From Perkinsela sp. CCAP 1560/9 (Eukaryota > Protista > Euglenozoa: Kinetoplastea), in NCBI GenBank assembly GCA_965644495.1, contig CBFFSA010000004.1, positions 930,001-994,000 on the forward strand: DNA of 64,000 nucleotides, written 5' to 3'. Shown here piece by piece: positions 825-61,718 of this stretch. The notes beneath the pieces were generated by a model. That model worked only from the letters and a program-made list of their open reading frames with translations, was not told the origin of the DNA and made no database searches. Numbering within the stretch: position 1 is the stretch's first letter; every line of letters begins with the position of its first letter. The translations under genes were made by a program, and so were the position numbers.

Positions 825-1061
825 GGTGCATAGGGGTACGACTGCGCATAGGGGTACAACCCTAATTTTGTAGAGTACGTTGTTTAAGAATAATGGATAC
901 AGGTTTACAGAAACGGAGTGAGAAATGGGGATTTTGGTATTGTGTCAACAAGTTTCATTGTTTGTGTAATTGATTCTCTTTGTATTATCTTGCTCATGGT
1001 TTTCGGTTTGTCCTTTTACAAACCATAGACTTCTGCCTACTTGCATTGCTTCGCTAGGACA

Positions 1062-1676
1062 ATGCCGACCTTGGAGCCTGTCTTGGAATATCTTTTCGGT
1101 CCCGCTCCTGGACATGAGTACGATGACGATGGACAGACGTGTTCTGTTTGCATTGACTTTTGCGCCGCCGAAACCGACCGTTTCGAGAGAGAGCTGGGTG
1201 TTGTCCCCTGGGGAAGTGCTTTCTCTCGCCAACGTGAGGCCACGCGAGGGAGGCTGCGCGAAGTTGAGCGCTGTCGTCGCTATTGTCAGCAATATCTTAC
1301 ACTCTGTAAAACACAAAATGTAGAGCGAAACGAGCTGCAGAACTCCAAAAATGAAGAAAAAACGTCACTGGAGACTACCAGCGAATGTGCTTCTTCATAC
1401 CGCTTGTGGAAAAATTATCTTTTTGTCCTGCGTAACCGACCCACGACTATGGAGATTTATGCTCCTACCAATTTGTCGCCCAACATGCGTGGACGCGATG
1501 CATTGCCAAATCAGAAACCCACTCAAGAACAGCAACCGAGGCCTGACTTTGCAAAGAGCTTAGCAGAATTAAAGCAAAAACATTTTCGAGCCATTGGAGA
1601 GAATGATACTTCACCTATCACTCTGGCAGATCAACACGCCACAATACCCATTGAAGCGAGGGATCTTACAAAATAA
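1062..1676 (+). CDS. Hypothetical protein
   Basis: Codirectional ORF of ~204 aa from the first ATG, with a CxxC motif; no family recognised. Confidence 0.4.
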   Translation: MPTLEPVLEYLFGPAPGHEYDDDGQTCSVCIDFCAAETDRFERELGVVPWGSAFSRQREATRGRLREVERCRRYCQQYLTLCKTQNVERNELQNSKNEEKTSLETTSECASSYRLWKNYLFVLRNRPTTMEIYAPTNLSPNMRGRDALPNQKPTQEQQPRPDFAKSLAELKQKHFRAIGENDTSPITLADQHATIPIEARDLTK

Positions 1677-1860
1677 TGTGCGAGAAACGTGTTTCGCTGT
1701 GCAGATTGAAAGCACTTTATTCATCATGAATCACAGCGAGATCCACATCCCTTCAATTATTCTTCCGAAATGCTGCACGGAGGTAGTACATTGTATCGTG
1801 TTCCAATGATGTTTTACATACAGGAAACATACCGTCCCCTCACTATTTTCTTTTTCGTAT

Positions 1861-2166
1861 CTGCACCCCTACTTTAAACCAGGGTCCGAAAAACTCCAAA
1901 AACTATTTTCTTTCATTTCAACTCGATATTCAATTACATTGAAGGTTACGCATTGGCTCTTCTCTTATCGAAGTATCGAGCAAAATGACTCTAAGATGGA
2001 TCTTTTAGGTCTTTTTTCGAAGCGGCGCAAGTTTTCTTTTGTCCCCTTTTTCTTCGCGTAGTTTTCGAAAAATCGGACCCCCCTGTTTGTACTTCCAAAA
2101 GTCAGGTTCCCCCTTTGTACTTCCAAAAGTACAGAAACCGGCGGAAGTATAAAGGGGGGGTAACAG
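1861..2166. mobile_element. Possible degenerate MITE remnant
   Basis: Direct repeat TTTGTACTTCCAAAAGT x2 (~2086-2130) and inverted GGGTCCGA/TCGGACCC. The right end, read in reverse (CTGTTAC-polyC-TTTA), resembles the solo end CTGTGAC-polyC-TTTA at 60956. Confidence 0.3.
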
Positions 2167-2328
2167 CAATTAGATCTAGTACCTTAATTTATTTACCTTA
2201 ATATCTGTTTCGACGGTAAGCGACGAAAAATGAAAATTTATTTCTATAGTATCTAATAATAGGGCGGCGGTAATTTCAGTTTTTAGAATCATTTTCTCCA
2301 TTTTGAAAACTTTGCGTCTTCCGATTTC

Positions 2329-3294
2329 ATGCCTGAATTCAACGCCCCTCAATCATGTCCTCCCGATGTGGAGACCAAATATTTTGCCCAACGATATGAA
2401 CTCTGGTCGAAATACGACAGCGGTGTAGCGATTGACACCGAGAGTTGGTACAGCGCCACCCCGGAATCCATTGCGACACACATAGCATCGCGATGTTGGA
2501 AATGGTATGGCAGTCGGTGCACTGAAAGCACAACGCAAGAGTCACGGATAGCGGCACAACCATCTTCCCTAGCACTGGGAAATGAAAAAAATGGACCTCA
2601 GCTCACATTTGTTGACGGAATGTGCGGATGTGGCTCCAACGCTATACAGCTTGCCTTGTTTTTTGACAAGATAATAGCAGTAGACATTGACCCACGAAAG
2701 ATAGAGATGGCGCAACACAATGCAAAAATTTATGGGGTAGCCAAAAAAATTGAGTTTCATACGTCGGACGTATTCGAACTCCTCGAGAACGAACTCTTGC
2801 CAAGGTTTCAGAAATCTAATGAAGAAACCCAACAGGGTGGGCAGGAAGAACTCTGTGGAGTATTTTTATCCCCACCCTGGGGTGGCCCGTTGTATTCTTT
2901 GACTGCGTATTATGATTTGCGAGATACCAACCCTAGCACGCTTGACTTGGTGGCAGCGTGCAGAGGACTCACCCCGAATGTCGTATTATACCTTCCACGC
3001 AACATTCGTGCCGAACAAGCCACCTTGTTGGCCCACCCTCCTACTCAGTTACCTCTGTGTTGCATTGAACATTGTATGATACGTCCCCCGAAAGCAAAGG
3101 CTACCGTGGTGTATTATTTTGACGCTCATTTGCCTACGGAAAGACTCGTACGCAGTGTTCCGACGCCCAGCGACGCCTCCCAGTGGCCCTCGGGTGTCCT
3201 TCCTAGCCCGATTCGTGGAGATGAACTTGAAAAATCCATGCGAGACTATGTTGGTCAGCTGATCCAGAATGTACGGATCAAGACCAACAAATAG
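2329..3294 (+). CDS. TGS1: Trimethylguanosine synthase (RNA cap guanine-N2 methyltransferase)
   Basis: Motifs DTESWYSATPESIA, SAM-binding DGMCGCGSNAIQLA, DIDPRKIEMAQHNAKIYGV and FLSPPWGGP. Confidence 0.93.
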   Translation: MPEFNAPQSCPPDVETKYFAQRYELWSKYDSGVAIDTESWYSATPESIATHIASRCWKWYGSRCTESTTQESRIAAQPSSLALGNEKNGPQLTFVDGMCGCGSNAIQLALFFDKIIAVDIDPRKIEMAQHNAKIYGVAKKIEFHTSDVFELLENELLPRFQKSNEETQQGGQEELCGVFLSPPWGGPLYSLTAYYDLRDTNPSTLDLVAACRGLTPNVVLYLPRNIRAEQATLLAHPPTQLPLCCIEHCMIRPPKAKATVVYYFDAHLPTERLVRSVPTPSDASQWPSGVLPSPIRGDELEKSMRDYVGQLIQNVRIKTNK

Positions 3295-3608
3295 AGATGA
3301 CACGTTGCGGTATCGCACTCTGTTTTTCATCACTTTCGGTTACTGGGGATATGACCCGCATACCGTGAGACTGTCTCTTTGATTGTGATGTGTCAACACT
3401 TGCATTACGGCTTCGCTTGTCCCTTTTCGGTCATCCACATAGGAGAACCAGTATGATGCTTTCTCCACACTTCAACTACTGTAGAGAGGTGGTTTTTCAA
3501 GAAAGTGAAGTGCGGCCGTTTCGCGTCGAATACGGTGGCGTTCAGCGGCATTTCCCAGTACAGCGTTCGTGCCATCTGCCTTATTCATTTTGACATACAC
3601 ATTGTATA

Positions 3609-4316
3609 CAGTCCAGGTATTGGTTTCCCCCCCAGGCTCCAGAGCGCGCCGTAAGAGCTTTTGACCTGATTCCTTCGGCATTCAACAGATCTCGAAAAAC
3701 TAGAGCGTTTCCCACAGTTGCTTTGCCCATCACCCCCCCTGGGTCCTAGGTGGGCGTGGTGAAAGTTGGCAAATTTCAAAAAAAAATATTTTCGAGGGGG
3801 GGTAAAAAATGAAAAAAATGTGTATAGATTCCTATATATTAATACCTACAATGGTCTCCTTGAACGCTCCGCACAATTCGCAAGCGTTTAGGAACTGAAT
3901 TTACACAAATTAAGAATTGGCGTCGATAAGGATGACGCTTAAGCATCACAAATGGCTTTCTTTATCGCCCTCCGGAGCTGTTTTTCGGTCCCTGGTTTCA
4001 AATTTTCTTTTACAATTCGGTCAAGGCGCTCTGGGAGTGCATTTCGTGACGTTTTATGGGTAATAGGGGGTATCTTGCTTTTCGGCGAGTTGTACTGGCC
4101 TTTAGTACTGGTCTTTAGTAGATTTGATGGGAGTATCCCTCGAATTCATAGAATGAGAAACCATATTTGAATGAAAAACTCCCAGTAGGTCTGATAGGCA
4201 AACAAACGGCGGGAAACGCTCTAGTTTTTCAAGATCTGTTGAATGCCGAAGGAATTAGGTCAAAAGCTCTTACGGTGTGTTCTGGAGCCTGGGGGGGAAA
4301 ACCAGTACCTGGACTG
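3609..4316. mobile_element. Tc1/mariner-type non-autonomous element (MITE-1), 708 bp
   Basis: Imperfect TIRs of ~130 bp (CAGTCCAGGTA...TACCTGGACTG), with TA on both sides (3607-8, 4317-8). A decayed HTH-like peptide (LRTIRKRLGTEFTQIKNWRR) lies in the interior. Confidence 0.88.
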
Positions 4317-53169: not shown

Positions 53170-53696
53170 AATTCAAACATTCTAAATAGCCCTTTTTTTA
53201 AGTGATCATTATGGTCAAATCTCCCCTTTTTTCCCCCGAATATTTAAACGTTTTGAACGGCACTCCAAATACTAAATTTTTAATTGTATTTCATCAGCTC
53301 ATCTTCTGAGGCTGAAATAAAGGCCATTCGTGCTTTCAATTTCCCATTTCTCTCGTTCATGTGTTGTCCATACAGTATCGACACCCTACAGAACTTTATA
53401 AGTGTATCACACCTTTTGTCAACCTGGTGTACCACAATTTGAGCCGTAGAACTCTTATTTTCTATACAATATAATTTTCTATACTCTTATTTTCTATACT
53501 ATAATGTCCCCGAATGTCTTGGTTTAAATAAGTCAATGTCTTCTCTTTTGTCAATACCAATCTAGAAGGCTTGTAAAATTGCTCAACTCGAAAAAACTTC
53601 GACGTATTTTTTTTCGGAAAAAAATGGGGGATAAAAAGGGAGATTCCACCATCATTATCAGTAATTGTTTATTAATAGAAACTTCAATTAAGGGTA

Positions 53697-54842
53697 GGCA
53701 CTTCCTCCTGCAGAATAGGTTACAGTTCAAATGTATTGATTTATGTATTGAGTTCGGTGGGGTGTAGCAAAAATTCCCTTTTCATAGATGGAAGGTCATT
53801 AAAGTGATGGATGAAGATAGGTGGAAGGTCAGTGGGAAAATGTGGTTCACCTACGGGAATGGGTGAAAGCAGTAAAGCGTGAGAGGAGTGTTCTGGGGGG
53901 AAAGGTGGAGGAGAAATCTCAACAGGTACGCTCTTTAACCGAGAAGTGCAACATAAAGTTGGAATTGCAACGGAAAGGTGAACGACAACGACGTGCTACT
54001 AATATTTTTTGAAGAAGTCACCTTTAATTTAAAGATGGGAAGTGGCGTTGTATTTTAGAACGTACTGTGCAACCGCTGTCAACATATAAACCGTTTATTT
54101 ATAACCATTGCTTTTCTTCCTGGACGTGATACTATGTTTGAAAGAACATTATGCAAAGTGTCAAAACTTTCATTTCGAGTGTATACGGCAGCCAAAATCT
54201 CACCAATTTCATTGTGAACCACAAAGTGAGAACGAAACGGTGCTTCTCCACGTAGCCGAATGCACTTTGCGGTCTCGAAAGTATGATACATTGCAAGCAC
54301 TGTACTAGTAAGCTCGGACGTATGATTGTCGCACTCCACCTGGCGCTGCTGGAGTAATGAAATCAAAACATCCTGAAAATGATCCACTGACGGAGTCATC
54401 CATTCTTGTGAAATTCGATTTGAAATCGCTTCCACGCAATTAGGATCCCAGCGAAATCCATATTTTTCCGTGTGCTTTAATTCAGAAAAGTATCTTTCAT
54501 CGCGCTTATTACTCAGATATTGCAACATCCACTGATGGTACCATGAAATTCACTCATATTAGAACCACTAGTTCCTATTTCCATAATGGCCATCGAAAGT
54601 CGTCTAGTCATCCCCAATTTCTCAGTTTTAATAATAGGAAATATGAAGTTCAGGCTCAATAGTACACAACTTTCATAGGAACTACTAAGTTCAGACTCAA
54701 TAATAGAAACACATTTCAGTTACATGTACTACTGAGTTTACTATTGAGTTTTTGCAATCCAGATGCGTACAACTCAATAGAGAACTCACTAGTGACTCTT
54801 CCACTCAATAGTTGCTGTCATTATGGCGGAACAAACACACAC
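53697..54842 (-). mobile_element. Internally deleted copy A of the DUF6729/Mutator-like transposon
   Basis: Shares the left end (GGCACTTCC..., ~310 bp), transposase fragments (54035-54641) and the right end (~200 bp ending GGCGGAAC-AAACACACAC) with copy B. Confidence 0.88.
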
Positions 54843-55448
54843 GGCACTTCCGCCGGCAGAAGAGGTTACAGTTCAATTGTATTGATTTATGTATTGAGTT
54901 CGGTGGGGTGTAGCAAAAATCCATTATTTCATTGATGGAAGGTCATGAAAGTCAAGGATGAAGATAGGTGGAAGGTCAGTAGGAAAATGTGGTTCACCGA
55001 CGGGAAAGGGTGAAAGCATAAAAGCGCGAGAGGAGTGTTCTGGGGGGAAAGGTGGAGAAGAAATCTCAACAGGTATGCTCTTTAGCCGAGAAGTGCAACA
55101 TAAAGTTGGAACTGCAACAGAAAGGTGAACGACAACGACGTGCTACTAATAATTTTTGGAGACATTCATGATTTTTGCGATTGCACTTAAAGGAAGAACA
55201 TGTATATTAAGTTTTTTAGTAAGTACCAAGTTTACTGAGTCAAAAACCGAAAAAGAGGGAAAAGTCAGGGGGCGGAGATCAGTCAGGAAGGAGGTGTAGC
55301 GTTGATGAAGGTGCAGAGTCGTGCGTATTTTTTAAACTATGAAGACAAAATTAGGAACCTAATCTTTAATTTATCCTTTACGTATTCCTTTAACTACTGT
55401 TTTTACGAAATGTTTCTTAAAAAGCAAATTCTCCTTTGCCTCAACGGA

Positions 55449-58400
55449 TTACAGAGCAACATTTTCCGTATTCTCAAAGCCGTCTACTTCTATTCGCGAA
55501 TCTCTATTCGGACATTTGCGTCCTCTCTTTTTTCTAGCATCCTCTTTTGCGCGAAGCTCGCCCATTATCTCATCATGCGACTTCACGTCCTCCGCGCATT
55601 CCTTGTAGCAAAGTCTGTTCTGATACGCAACCCGTAACTGATTAAAATCTCGAGGAAATCTATACTGGTCCTCATTTTCTTTGACGACGGAGCTGAATCT
55701 TGATAAAACTTTCGGCCAAGGTATGTGCCTCGAAGATTTGTCGCGCACTTCATCGATGACACATTGCAGGAGCAAGCGCACTTCAAGGGGATTGAATTTC
55801 ACGATCACGTTTCTTTGGCGAGGATCAATTCTTGGAGCATGTAAATGTGTTGCCAGGTGACATGCGTTGCTATTTCCTGTCGCGGTAAAATGTTGTACAG
55901 GTAAGTCATCAAACATTATGATCTCCTCGTGCGCCCCCAAACTTACATCAAAATCTGTATCAAAAGTTTTAAATATTCCTGCACCAGGGATATCAAGTAC
56001 GCAAACACCGCATATTCTGTGCCTCTGCGGAGTTGGTGATACGGAATCGAAAGGAACCACTAGATATGGTACGTGTGAAAGCTCGTGCAAAACGAGTACA
56101 GTGCTTGAAATGACATTGGCAAGAGAGCGAACTAGGGGAAGAAATAATTGCCCGTGCGAAACCTTGGTTATAACTTCCTCGACGTCGTTCTCGGGCTTGC
56201 TCAAGTGTTCAAGAACTCGTTCGAACGTCGTATCTTTGTCCACCCGCGATGTATCGCACCGCAGAATACAGGGATCTCCCGCACACAAGTATTCAAGTGT
56301 GCTCATCATTGACGCTGCGGTGCACTCTCCACCTAGGAAACGCACCTTTTCCTCGTGCTTAGTTGGTGTAGCCGAAAGTGCGAAGTTAAATTCCACATCG
56401 TCTTTGCCAAGAAATACGGGCTCGCAACCAAACTTATTTTGCGCCCAGCTGCGAACATTACTCAGCTGATTGTCAGACAAGGAATGTGGGATAAGTGCAT
56501 ATCCATCCCCAGATTGAACAGGGTGAACATATTGTGTGAAGAACAGTTCATGAGTCGTTAGTTGTTTCGCCACAGGGAGAAGTGCAAAAGGACTATTACA
56601 TAATCTTGCATCGTCCGCCCCCAGGAAGAGAGAAGAGAAGGTTTCTTTCAAGGTTCGAAACAACAGAGCGTCGAAACACATCGTATCCGGCGCTGATTTG
56701 AATCTCACAGCACATTTCACATTACTTCGATAAATAAAGCTCCTTGTCAGCGCGTCTACAGTTTCTGCTGAGCTACGCGCGCGAAGCTTCACTTTAGCTT
56801 TCAAACGAGAATGAAAACTTTCACAAATGTTGGTTCCTCGGCTGGAACGATACACCATATTCTTATCCACGCGCGTCAAATTCACATCTGTAGGGTCACT
56901 GAGGCAGTCCCGCTCGATGTGGGCTATTGCGTACGGCCAGAGAGAAGCTAACTTGGGGTTCCATGTAAAGATGTCCGAATATTTTTCCTTCAGGAGTTCC
57001 ATTTTGGAAAGTAATTTTGTCGGACGTGGAATAACTTTCTCATGCGCATCAAGATGTTCCTTTTTTGACAAAGCGATAGTAAGAGGCTCTACTACAGATC
57101 GGCAAAGCTCGGTGTAAAACATTTTCTGCCGATTTGATGCTGAAGTGCGTGGGATAACAGCTGCGAAACGGTGCAGCCAATGCCATAAATCGCATTTAAT
57201 ATGTGCAGATGGAAAGTGGCGTTGTATTTTAGAACGTACTGTGCAACAGTTGTCAACATACAGGGGTGGGCGCCTTCAGAGTGGGGGGGTCTAAAATTCG
57301 TAAAACTTGACCAATTTTGGAAAGTAATAGCGCATTCGAGAGCTCTCAAGTAGTCTGGTGTAATGGCAACATCCGTTTCCCGTTTTTAGACATTCGAGAT
57401 AAATGACAGAAAAACAAGGAATTTATTTTTCCCCGAAGATGCAATTTTTCAGTTTTTTTGGCTTTTTTTTAGTTTTTTTGCGCCGTTAATGCCTCAGAAA
57501 CGTGTACGATCGCGAACATCACGGTTTCCCTTCCAGAGAGATGCTTATTCACCACCTGGGAAGGTAAGGCCGTCGCATCGCATGCTTCTCGTAGACCATT
57601 ACTTTCGTTCTGGGTCCTACAATGCTACAGCATTCTCTCTTCTATCGAGAGATAGAAGATCTCCTCTCTTCTATCGAGAGTGCATACGAGGCACTTCAAA
57701 CCGATCTCAAGAGTACTTGCGTGAAGACCATAAAGAGTGTCTCCAAGCGCTTTCAAATCGTTATTGAGAAAAAAGGGGGAAATTGTGGGTACTGAGATTT
57801 TTTTTGGAAAAAAAGGACTTTTTCGCTTAAAAAATAAAGTTGCAATTCGTGTTTGGGACCATTCTAGTTTTCTTTGATTCCCGTAAACTTTCGCAGAGTG
57901 CTTTTTACGATTACACCAGACTATTTGAGAGCTCTCGAATGCGCTATTACTTTCCAAAATTGGTCAAGTTTTACAAATTTTAGACCCCCCCACTCTGAAG
58001 GTGCCCACCCATGTATATAACCATTGCTTTGCTTCCTGGACGTGATGCTATGTTTGAAAGAACATTGTGCAAAGTGTCAAAACTTTCATTTCGAGTGTAT
58101 ACGGCAGCCAAAATCTCACCAATTTCATTGTGAACAACAAAGTGAGAACGAAAAGGTGCTTCCCCACGCAGTCGAATGCACTTTGCGGTCTCGAAAGTAT
58201 GATCCATTGCAAGCACTGTACCAGTCAGCTCGGACATATAGTTGTCACACTCCACCTGGCGCTGCTGGAGTAATGAAATCAAAACATCCTGAAAATGATC
58301 CACTGATGGAGTCATCCATTCTTGTGAAATTCGATTTGAAATCGCTTCCACGCAATTAGGATCCCAGCGAAATCCAAATTTTTCCGTGTGCTTTAATTCA

Positions 58401-59200
58401 AAAATGTGTCTTTCATCGCGCTTATTACTCAGATACTGCAACGTCCGCTGATGGTAATCGACGGCATACACTTCTTGCAGAATACCTTGAAATTCACTCA
58501 TATTAGAACCACTAGTTCCTATTGCCATAATGGCCGTTGAAAGTCGTCTAGTCATCCCCAATTTCTCAGTTTTAATAATAGGAAAGGAATTTCGTGCCTT
58601 GTGGGACAGGCTGGAAATTAAGCTCTTTTCATCACTTGATATTACCTTACGACACTCAGTGCTACGACATTGATACACTTCACAAAGATAGTACATTGGT
58701 GTCGAAAGATCAAAAATCCGACGCACAGGAGAAAGCTTCATGAAAGTCAATCGCTCTTTGCAATGAAGACAGTGTAGGTTTTCTTTTTCGCCTTGGCGCA
58801 TGGGCGCCCATATGATCCATGGCAAGGTAAAAAACGTTTCCAATGAACTCCTAGGCTCCGGAGAAAAGAACCAAAGGGAAGTACATGTAGTTTTTGTTTT
58901 TAATTCTTCGTATGCCCTTCGAATTGCCGTGACTTGATGTGAAGACATTCCTGTTTCGAGCAAATGCGTCCAATATTTTGTCACTTCTGTTCGTTCGTGT
59001 GTGGTTTCTTCTGGGCGAGAAGCGAACCGACAAAGCTCCGAATTTTCGGCTACTACACGCGAAAGGGTGGTTGAAAGTTCGTTGTTCCTTTTTTCCATTT
59101 CCTCAATTTGTGTTTCTAGCTTTTTGATGCTTCCCGTAAGTTGCTTCTTTTCCTTGGCCATTGTTTGGATGACGTTCAGTAGGTCCGTTTCACAAGACAT
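55449..59200 (-). pseudogene. DUF6729/MULE-like DDE transposase interrupted by MITE-3 (998 aa after in-silico excision)
   Basis: CxxC...RRIFDL...YQC...FP region (DUF6729-like), MDHTF, NEIGEI, VIY|VDNCC, CDLWHWLHR, RGTNICESFH, then OTU-like and Myb/SANT-like C-terminal regions. Removing 755 nt joins ORFs 57980-59200 and 55449-57122 in frame. Confidence 0.85.
57261..58013. mobile_element. Tc1/Tc3-like MITE-3, 753 bp
   Basis: TIRs of ~104 bp (CAGGGGTGGGCGCCTTCAGAG.../...CTCTGAAGGTGCCCACCCATG); TA TSD at 57259-60 and 58014-15. Decayed Tc3-like N-terminal peptides (GFPSREM..HLGR; LLSRDRR) in the interior. Confidence 0.92.
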
Positions 59201-59638
59201 GACTTAAATAATCAGAAATCTAGAAATGATTTTTAGAGTACCAGGAAAGTTCAATAGTTTTGTTTGTAAAGTGATCATCTTGAACAGTCAGGGTACAATA
59301 GCTGAGGCTTTAAACTCTCAAACATGTACTAGAAATCGTTTCTGGGAAAACAATTTTGACGAAATCAAAAAAAATTATTGGACTACAAAAAAATTAGGTA
59401 TGAAGTTCAGACTCAATAGTACACAAGTTTCATAGGAACTATTAAGTTCAGACTCAATAATAGAAACACACTTCAGTTACTATTGAGTTTACTATTGAGT
59501 TTTAGCAATCCAGATGCGTGCAACTCAATAGAGAACTCACTAGTGACTCTTCAACCCAATAGTTGCTGTCACTATGGCGGAACTAACACACACACTAAAA
59601 GTAATTAAAATTAAGGCAACTTTAATTAAGGCAACTTT

Positions 59639-59760
59639 AATTTCTTTTTTAGGCTCTTCGTTAAACGCGGTGGTTGTTTTCAACTTAGAAGTCACTCATG
59701 CTGCGCGCTTCGCGTTGAAAACTACCACTGCGTTTAACGAAGAGCCTAAAAAAGAAAATT
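59639..59760. repeat. ~120-bp foldback palindrome (possible mini-MITE GGCTC...GAGCC, 59652-59746)
   Basis: Arms of ~46 bp: AATTTCTTTTTTAGGCTCTTCGTTAAACGCGGTGGTTGTTTTCAAC and GTTGAAAACTACCACTGCGTTTAACGAAGAGCCTAAAAAAGAAAATT. Confidence 0.85.
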
Positions 59761-60383
59761 TAGCCTGGAAAGCTGAAGAAAACGGAAAGATTATAGCCAA
59801 AAATAGCCGATTTTCGGATAAAAATGGGGTCATTTCGCTCTCAGAGCACTGAATCCGACATTTGCGTGTGGGAAATTCGTCGCTTTCTTTATGTTCTGAC
59901 GATGGACTTCAATCGGAAGCATCACCAAACCATTGCTATCAGTAAAAACGAAATCAGTTTCTATGTCAGGGCGTCGACGTCGTCCTCGCGGTCTGAAGGA
60001 TCTTGCGTGATTTGAGGACCTGGGCGATTTTCAGTGTTTAGGACCTCGGCAAGAGTTGCTCTACTTGGGCCAAGTCTTGTAGATCTCGTTCTAGAGCTCG
60101 TTTTCGGGTAGACGTTTACGTTTACTTTCGTTGTAGTGAGATAAGTATTTTGAAAAAAAGGGAAACTGAGTGAAACGCACCATGAACTCTTTCCCATTCG
60201 CGAGAAGCTCTGCTCAGACCTAAGCTTTTCGCCATTTGCGTCATCATGACCTTTTCCGCTAGGGAAGAACGGTACTGCTTTGGGGTCTCTATATAATTTA
60301 GGTCGCCCAAGACCTTCGCTTCAAGGATGGTGAGCAAATATGCATCCATTTTTAAAAAAAAAACGAAATCTACTTTGTAACAT

Positions 60384-60471
60384 ACTTTTGTTCCTCACCA
60401 TCTTTTTCGCATTAATACGACTTTTGTTGACACAACTTTTGTTGCCTCGACTTTTGTTGAGATAACTTTTT
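60384..60471. repeat. 15-bp-period repeats (ACTTTTGTTG-N5)
   Basis: ACTTTTGTT at ~60384, 60420, 60435 and 60450, with a partial copy at 60466; typical of transposon subterminal repeats. Confidence 0.7.
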
Positions 60472-61718
60472 CCCCCCTGTATTGGGCAGGGAATGCGACT
60501 CCAACCACACCATTCTTCCGACCCAAAAAGACCCCTTTTTTGTCCCCGAAAATTACGTTTTCGCATTTTTTGGTCAAAAATGGGTCATTTTGGGAGGCGT
60601 ATCACGGCTTCGGGAAGCTATATCTCGCTAAAGCAATGGCGTAGAAAGCTAGAATAGGTCCCAAGCTATCAAAATACAATAGGCGAAACAATTTTAGAAA
60701 AATATTTTAGATTAATGCCATCGAAAGTGTACCCCAAAATTGATTTTTTTGACTTTTTTATAGTTTTCATTTCTTCACCCCAGATTCATATTCTGGTGCC
60801 TTTGCAACGTTTTTTCACCCATTTTTACATGCTTTCGTATACCTAGTTCAAACCTTCCTCAGTGACCCACTGTCGACGGTGGTTCACGCTTTCCCATTTG
60901 TAGTCCCTCCCAAAGACGAAAATTGTGACGAGCGCATTCTGTCCAAATTCTGGTACTGTGACCCCCCCCCCTTTAATATGGACAGGAGGTATCCCCCCCT
61001 TTATTTAACAATAAATATATTTCTATTTCTAACATCAAAAAATTTCTACAACCAGAAAAATTGATAGAAAAAAATAGAAAATACCTAAATTTGCTTCAGT
61101 TTCACCCTTTTCTCTCACACGTTGAACTGGTTGAAGACCGTAAAGGTAGGCGAAACATGCGAAGCTCGTCTAGAAAAGTTCGAAAAACATGAAAAATGAT
61201 CAGAAATTGAACACTTTTAGCAGAAATGTGATATTTATGCTACAAACGACAATATTTAAATAAGAACTGTTTTGGGCTTTTATCAGCACCACTTTAATTA
61301 AAGCAACTTCAATTAAGGCAATAATTAATTTTTAAAACTGTTCTGCCTTAATTACGTTTATCCTTAATAACCGTTTCACCGGTAATTATTATTAAAAAAA
61401 TATTAAAACAGCTTTGAATTGGATAGGTCTGTTTCGCACTGAATTTTATGGTCAATACTTCATGCCGCTGTACAACTGAACTGAAAATACATCATGTTGC
61501 CTATAATCCTATTTATAACCGGTCGAACTGTATTACTTCGTCTAATTATGCGTATTTCCTTACTACGAACTAGGCTTTCAAAGATGTGCTGTAGTTCAAC
61601 TATAGGTTTAGAAAAAAGTTTCGCGCAAATTAAGTGCGCAAATTAATTATCAAAAATAATTGCAATCGTATTTCTAGAACATTGTTTAAATTACACATTT
61701 TTTATGAATTTGCAATGA

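Follow-up and report, generated by a model that had tools for sequence, protein, structure and literature searches.

How two copies of one repeat family came to stand tip to tip, in the same orientation, is the question raised by a locus in a 64-kb stretch of DNA from Perkinsela sp. CCAP 1560/9 (contig CBFFSA010000004.1, positions 930,001 to 994,000), hereafter called the window. Both copies, A and B, lie within the window, and ...GGCGGAACAAACACACAC of A abuts GGCACTTCCGCC... of B at 54842/54843. An earlier note, made from the letters of the window, gave the place of this same-orientation pair and its junction string correctly, and interpreted them as a head-to-tail tandem of a transposon without terminal inverted repeats (TIRs), with a TA target and an unusual end chemistry. 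We conclude that the nested pair was very probably produced by two independent insertions of one DNA transposon family of the Mutator/IS256 superfamily. The conclusion is carried by the boundaries, target-site duplications (TSDs), relative ages, fold, and presence/absence polymorphisms observed for the family. The end chemistry is that of ordinary 8-bp TSDs and a short TIR.

Ends, target-site duplications and ages of the copies

The window is located on contig C4 of a 21-Mb genome (G000, with contigs named C1, C3, C4 and so on), in which the family is present on C18, twice on C11 in a segmental duplication, on C1, as a truncated copy on C12, and as A and B on C4. In every full copy compared, homology begins at GGCACTTCCGCC and stops at GGCGGAACTAAC. 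The two tips match in register at nine of 12 positions (G1, A4, and TTCCGCC at positions 6–12), and the element has a 12-bp imperfect TIR, which contains the inverted TTCCGCC/GGCGGAA recorded before at both ends. The tips of a relative from metagenome scaffolds (P0005), the transposase of which is 34% identical, are GGCTCTTCCGGC and GGCGGAACCGAC, with the same offsets. This agreement independently places the 3′ boundary at ...AC and not past the AC run, so that the last base of A is 54836 and that of B is 59587. The 3′ boundaries called previously (54842 and 59595) have to be moved inwards to the canonical tip ...GGCGGAACTAAC of the solo copies and the relative. The six bases ACACAC thus separate the canonical tips of A and B, which had been said to join with no spacer, and the element described as TIR-less has a TIR that is conserved in the relative. 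TIRs in the Mutator/IS256 superfamily are usually long; a short, imperfect TIR of 12 bp is atypical, yet within the described range (PMC6446971).

The ends are asymmetric and carry multiple TATTGAG/CTCAATA boxes, as had been noticed from the window. There are six boxes per full copy, all of them terminal, at most 50 bp from the 5′ end or at most 180 bp from the 3′ end, and the expectation by shuffling is 0.7 per whole 4 kb. The boxes are presumed to be transposase-binding sites.

Perfect 8-bp TSDs flank six full-length insertions, copy B included (Table 1). Two of the insertions are from ENA ERZ24900291, a second assembly of the same organism that seems to hold a second haplotype or strain, and are missing from G000. 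Their sites in G000 (C3 ~664280 and C10 ~421887) are exact empty sites in which the octamer is found once, and are filled in the ENA contigs ctg3677l (L081) and ctg4008l (L082). The insertion flanked by ACATTTGT carries an intact 998-aa gene. These polymorphic pairs of filled and empty sites demonstrate that the family moved recently. The only copies in G000 with an intact 997-aa open reading frame (ORF) are C11:459937-464011 and 471973-476047, which have identical flanks and are 12,036 bp apart; they stem from a segmental duplication and not from two insertions.

Both outer flanks of the A/B pair are repeats. Five other copies of the outer repeat are uninterrupted at the homologous place, where they read ...caatTAAGGGTAattaaaattaagg... 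(also given as ...TAAGGGTAATTAAAATT...), and the insertion of A therefore duplicated the eight bases TAAGGGTA. The order in the window is TAAGGGTA, A, B, ACACACAC, TAAAAGTA, attaaaattaagg, and the outer repeat resumes with ATTAAAATTAAGG... directly after TAAAAGTA. The TA dinucleotides reported at 53695-6 and 59596-7 are both present; the first closes the left copy of A's TSD, and the second opens the right copy. A TA target with a single-TA empty site is not what the empty sites show: they reveal an 8-bp duplication, and TA is not duplicated at the insertions of this family. Longer TSDs, which had been thought absent, occur as the six perfect octamers, two of them with allelic empty sites. The solo copies have standard TSDs, of 8 bp rather than 9–11 bp, and the true 3′ boundary is inside the called boundary. 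This is essentially the outcome that the earlier note had named as speaking against its model.

Other types of element were considered and rejected. A TA-targeting cut-and-paste element would leave a 2-bp TA duplication, which is not found here; the TA duplications of the locus belong to the outer repeat and to a miniature inverted-repeat transposable element (MITE) nested in B. A rolling-circle, Helitron-like element is incompatible with a protein that is a DDE enzyme and with the presence of TSDs and a TIR.

The sequence of A has 5.2–6.0% mismatches to every other copy (5.8% to B), and B and the copies on C18, C11, and C1 differ from each other by 0.7–1.5%. Hypermutation similar to repeat-induced point mutation was dropped as a source of A's divergence, since the first differences seen were G-to-T transversions. 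The left copy of B's TSD, ACACACAC, is composed of the last two bases of A (54835-54836) and ACACAC (54837-54842). Because A is 5.8% different from B, B is only ~1% different from the other copies, and B has its own perfect TSD, the pair represents two events separated in time and not a dimer; the same divergence of A and the same TSD contradict the dimeric or circular origin suggested earlier. Movement of A and B as one composite unit was also rejected, because the right copy of B's TSD is positioned between B and the right copy of A's TSD, an order that a one-unit insertion would not yield.

The junction is not an artefact of assembly, as the same join of A and B is present in the 1.4–1.9% diverged sequence of ERZ24900291. 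Contig ctg3998l (L080) of that assembly has the layout TAAGGGTA, A, ACACAC, B, ACACACAC, TAAAAGTA. The two assemblies are 99.9% identical at the C1 locus and 98.1–98.8% identical at the A/B locus. The allelic A is 98.25% identical to A of the window, and the allelic B is 4076 bp long and free of the MITE, with the MITE site intact and without a footprint. The MITE is also missing from all other copies of the family, and contigs from a single public run contain a MITE-less joint, 57258>58014. The MITE therefore arrived after the two sequences split, and is a recent, polymorphic insertion of a TA-targeting element. In the same run, the depth of the family is ~8x that of the A-specific stretch. 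Of the ORFs used as queries, only the 149-aa ORF of A led to the orthologous A/B locus; exact-protein look-ups with four ORFs of the window (two neighbouring genes, one gene further upstream, and the 406-aa fragment of B) returned no match.

Fold and relatives of the transposase

The element is ~4.08 kb long and contains one intronless gene, which is an uninterrupted 997-aa ORF in the C11 copy. The protein has a coiled coil at its N-terminus, followed by a Cys-rich DUF6729 region that resembles a zinc ribbon and by a DDE core of the RNase-H-like type with residues D333, D398, and E542. DUF6729 was the only Pfam domain found in the 997-aa protein (residues 105–264, E 1e-14). An exhaustive search identified 462 relatives, the nearest of which are 34–35% identical, and a few of which reach E 2e-5 for Pfam MULE. 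DUF6729 is also present in 32 of 51 sampled relatives. A fused 3′-5′ exonuclease (DNA_pol_A_exo1) occurs in eight, and an OTU protease domain in three, of the 51 (relatives P0014-P0087).

Among 44 aligned cores, D333 and D398 are invariant, D419 is conserved in 40 and H422 in 41, and E542 is present in 37 of the 38 ungapped rows. In the literature on DDE superfamilies, a [C/D]-x2-H motif shortly after the second Asp is a signature of the Mutator/IS256 superfamily, and is matched here by D419-x2-H422. The core also fits that superfamily in its RNase-H-like fold, its DDE residues, and the alpha-helical insertion that separates the second D from the E. The AlphaFold (AF2) model of residues 285–640 has a pLDDT (predicted local distance difference test) value of 93, and its only significant matches in the PDB are to ISCth4 of the IS256 family, with E-values from 1.6e-6 to 8e-5 and a template modelling (TM) score of ~0.5. 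In the ESM Atlas, the first neighbours of the core are DUF6729 clusters (TM 0.74–0.83), followed by oomycete MULE, bacterial Transposase_mut/IS256, and archaeal MULE clusters (TM 0.58–0.63). When the PDB was searched by sequence, neither the protein nor a profile gave a match. The DUF6729 region, modelled with a pLDDT of 89, is formed by beta-hairpins bearing CxxC pairs, followed by long helices. A Foldseek search with this model produced no significant PDB match, merely weak zinc-ribbon-like rows. The DUF6729 region is probably the DNA-binding part of the protein.

On the basis of fold, motifs, and TSD, the family is assigned to the DUF6729-carrying branch of the Mutator/IS256 superfamily. 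The previous description as a DUF6729-bearing, Mutator-like DDE element of a poorly characterised lineage agrees with the fold and motifs, and literature searches on DUF6729 and PF20499 found no papers and no published description.

The closest eukaryotic likeness is to Mutator-like elements (MULEs), especially to those with short or no TIRs (VANDAL, Curupira) and to those with 8-bp TSDs (Spectre). The TSDs of MULEs are 8–11 bp long, and short-TIR and TIR-less MULEs are known (PMC6446971). The family shares with them the DDE RNase-H-like core with the [C/D]-x2-H motif, an N-terminal zinc-binding region, and a TSD within the 8–11-bp range (PMC6446971), as well as short degenerate TIRs with subterminal repeats and internally deleted, non-autonomous derivatives. 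Unlike in MULEs, the Pfam MULE score is 17 bits against a gathering score of 27.6, the N-terminal domain is DUF6729 and not a FAR1/WRKY or SWIM finger, and a C-terminal region of ~400 residues has no match. The host is of the kinetoplastid type, and kinetoplastids were not in the MULE survey (PMC6446971).

ISCth4 (PDB: 6xgx/6xg8) of the IS256 family provides the best structural match to the catalytic core and also has 8-bp TSDs; the spacing of the first and second catalytic Asp is 65 residues in the protein studied here and 66 in ISCth4 (PMC7780238). In contrast to IS256 elements, to which identity is 13–15%, the protein scores 14.7 against the 150-bit cut-off of NCBIfam IS256 and is 2.5 times longer, the TIR is a 12-bp imperfect one, and no circles were seen.

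Position of B at the tip of A

Integration of the element probably proceeds by staggered cuts 8 bp apart, which results in the 8-bp target duplication. In the proposed sequence of events, A would have inserted into the TA-flanked outer repeat at TAAGGGTA, and subsequently lost most of its interior and diverged by ~5–6%. Much later, B would have inserted into the octamer ACACACAC, formed by the last two bases of A and six AC bases, and the MITE would have entered B on one haplotype. By analogy with eukaryotic MULEs, the family probably moves by cut-and-paste. The (AC)3 tail may have arisen at, or come with, the 3′ end of A, or may remain from an earlier event.

Several observations weigh against this reading. 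The right copy of A's TSD matches the left one at only six of eight bases. Both the canonical element and the empty site lack the ACACAC present at A's tip, which requires one extra, unexplained step. Curated hidden Markov models score below their cut-offs (MULE 15.6–17.2 bits against 27.6, ISL3 14.5–16.6 against 23, and NCBIfam IS256 14.7 against 150), so that the family is placed in the superfamily mainly by its fold and motifs. Neither an excision footprint nor a circle was seen for the family, which bears on the choice between cut-and-paste and copy-out.

Eight independent insertions of the family are known in the 21 Mb, and one of them has an 8-bp target that overlaps the tip of another copy by 2 bp. 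We estimate the odds of such an overlap at ~1e-5 to 1e-4 under uniform insertion, and at ~1e-3 if ~5% of the genome is permissive. The junction of A and B is the only tip-to-tip junction in the genome of the window. Two candidates for a tip-to-tip junction of the relative in metagenome contigs were rejected, as both were chance matches in GC-rich bacterial DNA, the one being a terminator hairpin and the other coding sequence. The metagenome flanks of the relative are unreliable for determining TSDs, since contigs share one flank and not the other.

One possible cause of the adjacency, which was among the alternatives of the earlier note (targeting of its own ends) and which we put forward tentatively from this single case, is that transposase bound to the intact terminal repeat and boxes of A tethered the incoming transpososome. 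A retains both tips and all subterminal boxes, and a tip overlap in the same orientation in one of eight independent insertions is improbable if insertion is random. However, no second junction of this kind exists in the genome, nor was one found for the relative in metagenomes. Moreover, B could have been attracted by the target itself, a perfect (AC)4, and the locus is a transposon pile-up that tolerates insertions. Insertion beside own ends occurs in IS30 and IS21, and homing to resident copies in P elements. The new copy at the tip of the resident, head to tail, resembles the tandems of IS30 and IS21 and P-element homing, but differs from them in being a single case, with copies of different age and a spacer foreign to both target and element.

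A preference of B for ACACACAC, or for alternating purine-pyrimidine DNA, that happened to be at the tip of A is an equally tentative account. The TSD of B is exactly (AC)4, another TSD contains GTGTG, and in metagenome contig L059 the corresponding tip of a relative adjoins a long (TG)n, which hints that this end and AC/TG runs are linked, although metagenome flanks can be chimeric. The remaining TSDs are not AC-rich. As ACACACAC occurs ~1,280 times in the genome, the choice of A's tip would still be ~1 in 1,000, and the (AC)3 at the tip is left unaccounted for. Both end-directed targeting and AC preference are compatible with two insertions, and end-directed targeting concerns only the cause of the adjacency.

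It is unlikely that ACACAC is the retained spacer of a circle or tandem end-to-end junction that was carried into the chromosome in the manner of IS256 elements. ISCth4, the closest solved fold, forms TIR-TIR junctions with spacers of 6–8 bp, 6 bp being the most efficient, and generates 8-bp TSDs (PMC7780238), which is matched by the 6-bp spacer and 8-bp TSD of B; the six bases are foreign to both element and target. However, A and B are 5.8% apart and hence cannot be the opposite ends of a single molecule, B is flanked left and right by a normal TSD, and the number six is no more than the 8-bp duplication less the 2 bp of overlap. In the genome, no junction of a circle was seen.

The model of the earlier note, in which an element without TIRs targets TA, generates no duplication beyond it, and gives head-to-tail dimers with directly abutted ends, is refuted by the filled and empty sites. 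TA is present on both outer flanks and the ends as called do abut, but every solo copy has an 8-bp TSD, two insertions as well as A have exact empty sites, the relative shares the 12-bp TIR, and the two copies differ in age. An assembly artefact or a recent tandem duplication is the least probable of all: no contig among those listed from the single public run (contigs only) bridges 54842/54843, but the identical junction in a differently assembled, diverged sequence, the unequal ages of A and B, which also differ in structure, and the TSD of B practically exclude both, as they do a one-unit dimer.

Features of the locus and their meaning

The features of the A/B locus are listed in Table 1 together with the TSDs of the family.

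Table 1. Features of the A/B locus, with positions in the window, and TSDs of the family
Feature	Position	Strand	Basis or remark
Left copy of A's 8-bp TSD, TAAGGGTA	53689..53696	.	Five uninterrupted outer-repeat paralogues read ...caatTAAGGGTAattaaaatt...
Copy A, 1140 bp, old, non-autonomous, internally deleted	53697..54836	-	Element positions 1-320, 2451-2945, 2972-3074, and 3886-4075 kept
ACACAC, separating the canonical 3′ tip of A from the 5′ tip of B	54837..54842	.	Not in outer-repeat empty sites
Copy B, full-length, 4745 bp here, tips GGCACTTCCGCC and GGCGGAACTAAC	54843..59587	-	83 bp near 55240 missing relative to other copies; interrupted by nested MITE
B's 5′ TIR, GGCACTTCCGCC	54843..54854	+	Identical in all copies; A's is 53697-53708
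B transposase gene, C-terminal part: remaining DDE core and region without match	55449..57122	-	Product 97% identical to residues 390-997 of intact ORF
Nested 753-bp MITE in B, 112-bp TIRs	57261..58013	.	TA duplication at 57259-60 and 58014-15
B transposase gene, N-terminal part: coiled coil and DUF6729, runs into MITE	57980..59200	-	Pfam DUF6729 E 2e-17; product 98% identical to residues 1-398 of intact ORF
B's 3′ subterminal CTCAATA/TATTGAG cluster	59399..59560	.	A's homologous cluster is 54642-54810; one box near each 5′ tip
B's 3′ TIR, GGCGGAACTAAC, reverse complement GTTAGTTCCGCC	59576..59587	+	A's is 54825-54836
Right copy of B's TSD, ACACACAC	59588..59595	.	
Right copy of A's TSD, now TAAAAGTA, 6/8 bases kept	59596..59603	.	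Paralogous empty sites
TSDs in G000			C18 ATTTTTGT; C11 AGTGTGAC; C1 AGTTTTTC; copy B ACACACAC
TSDs of two insertions in ENA ERZ24900291			ACATTTGT and GTAATATC; missing from G000

The gene organisation around the element is kinetoplastid-style. All 25 large ORFs outside the element are on the + strand, intronless, and tightly packed, and the transposase gene is antisense to them. Rfam produced no match in the window, a spliced-leader motif was matched only with one mismatch, and an atlas search with a housekeeping enzyme pointed to no useful taxon.

At positions 54081-54110, copy A contains ~13 extra, near-palindromic bases, ATAAACCGTTTAT, where other copies read CAACATATATAACC. The insert is located exactly at the TA-rich site that holds the MITE in B, and could be either a footprint of excision or an indel of independent origin. 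The outer repeat around A and B (window ~53678-61385, with the right end near 61385) is a many-copy, TA-flanked repeat with AATTAAGG subterminal motifs and inverted ends of the CCG(G)T.GAAAC type. Inside it is a 240-bp foldback MITE (59640-59876), for which a first look gave ~700 candidates in the genome.

Elsewhere in G000, C1:2638153-2671624 holds an array of five copies of a 6,485-bp unit, with 99.94–99.97% identity between the units. Each unit joins element positions 1050-4075 to 3,459 bp of flanking DNA. The array is likewise present in ENA ctg4001l (L079), and adjoins one full copy. One of the duplication breakpoints is inside the transposase gene, which results in four C-terminally truncated transposase genes.

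The main value of the analysis is corrective: the odd chemistry proposed for the pair is not there, and the family follows the normal rules of Mutator-type elements. In the literature searched, it provides the first worked-out anatomy of a DUF6729-type transposon, comprising its ends, TSD, catalytic residues, and fold. The DNA transposons of kinetoplastids described there are only ancient Merlin relics, with none in trypanosomatids (PMC8101967, PMC12278014). The presence/absence alleles, including one with an intact 998-aa gene, establish that the element moved recently in a genome of kinetoplastid-style organisation. The insertion at the tip of a sibling copy and the six foreign bases offer a concrete hook on own-end targeting or junction intermediates. 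If the six bases were a spacer of the IS256 type, the eukaryotic DUF6729 branch would still use joined-end circular intermediates, or would capture its own ends, and bacterial copy-out/paste-in chemistry would be at work in a eukaryotic nucleus.

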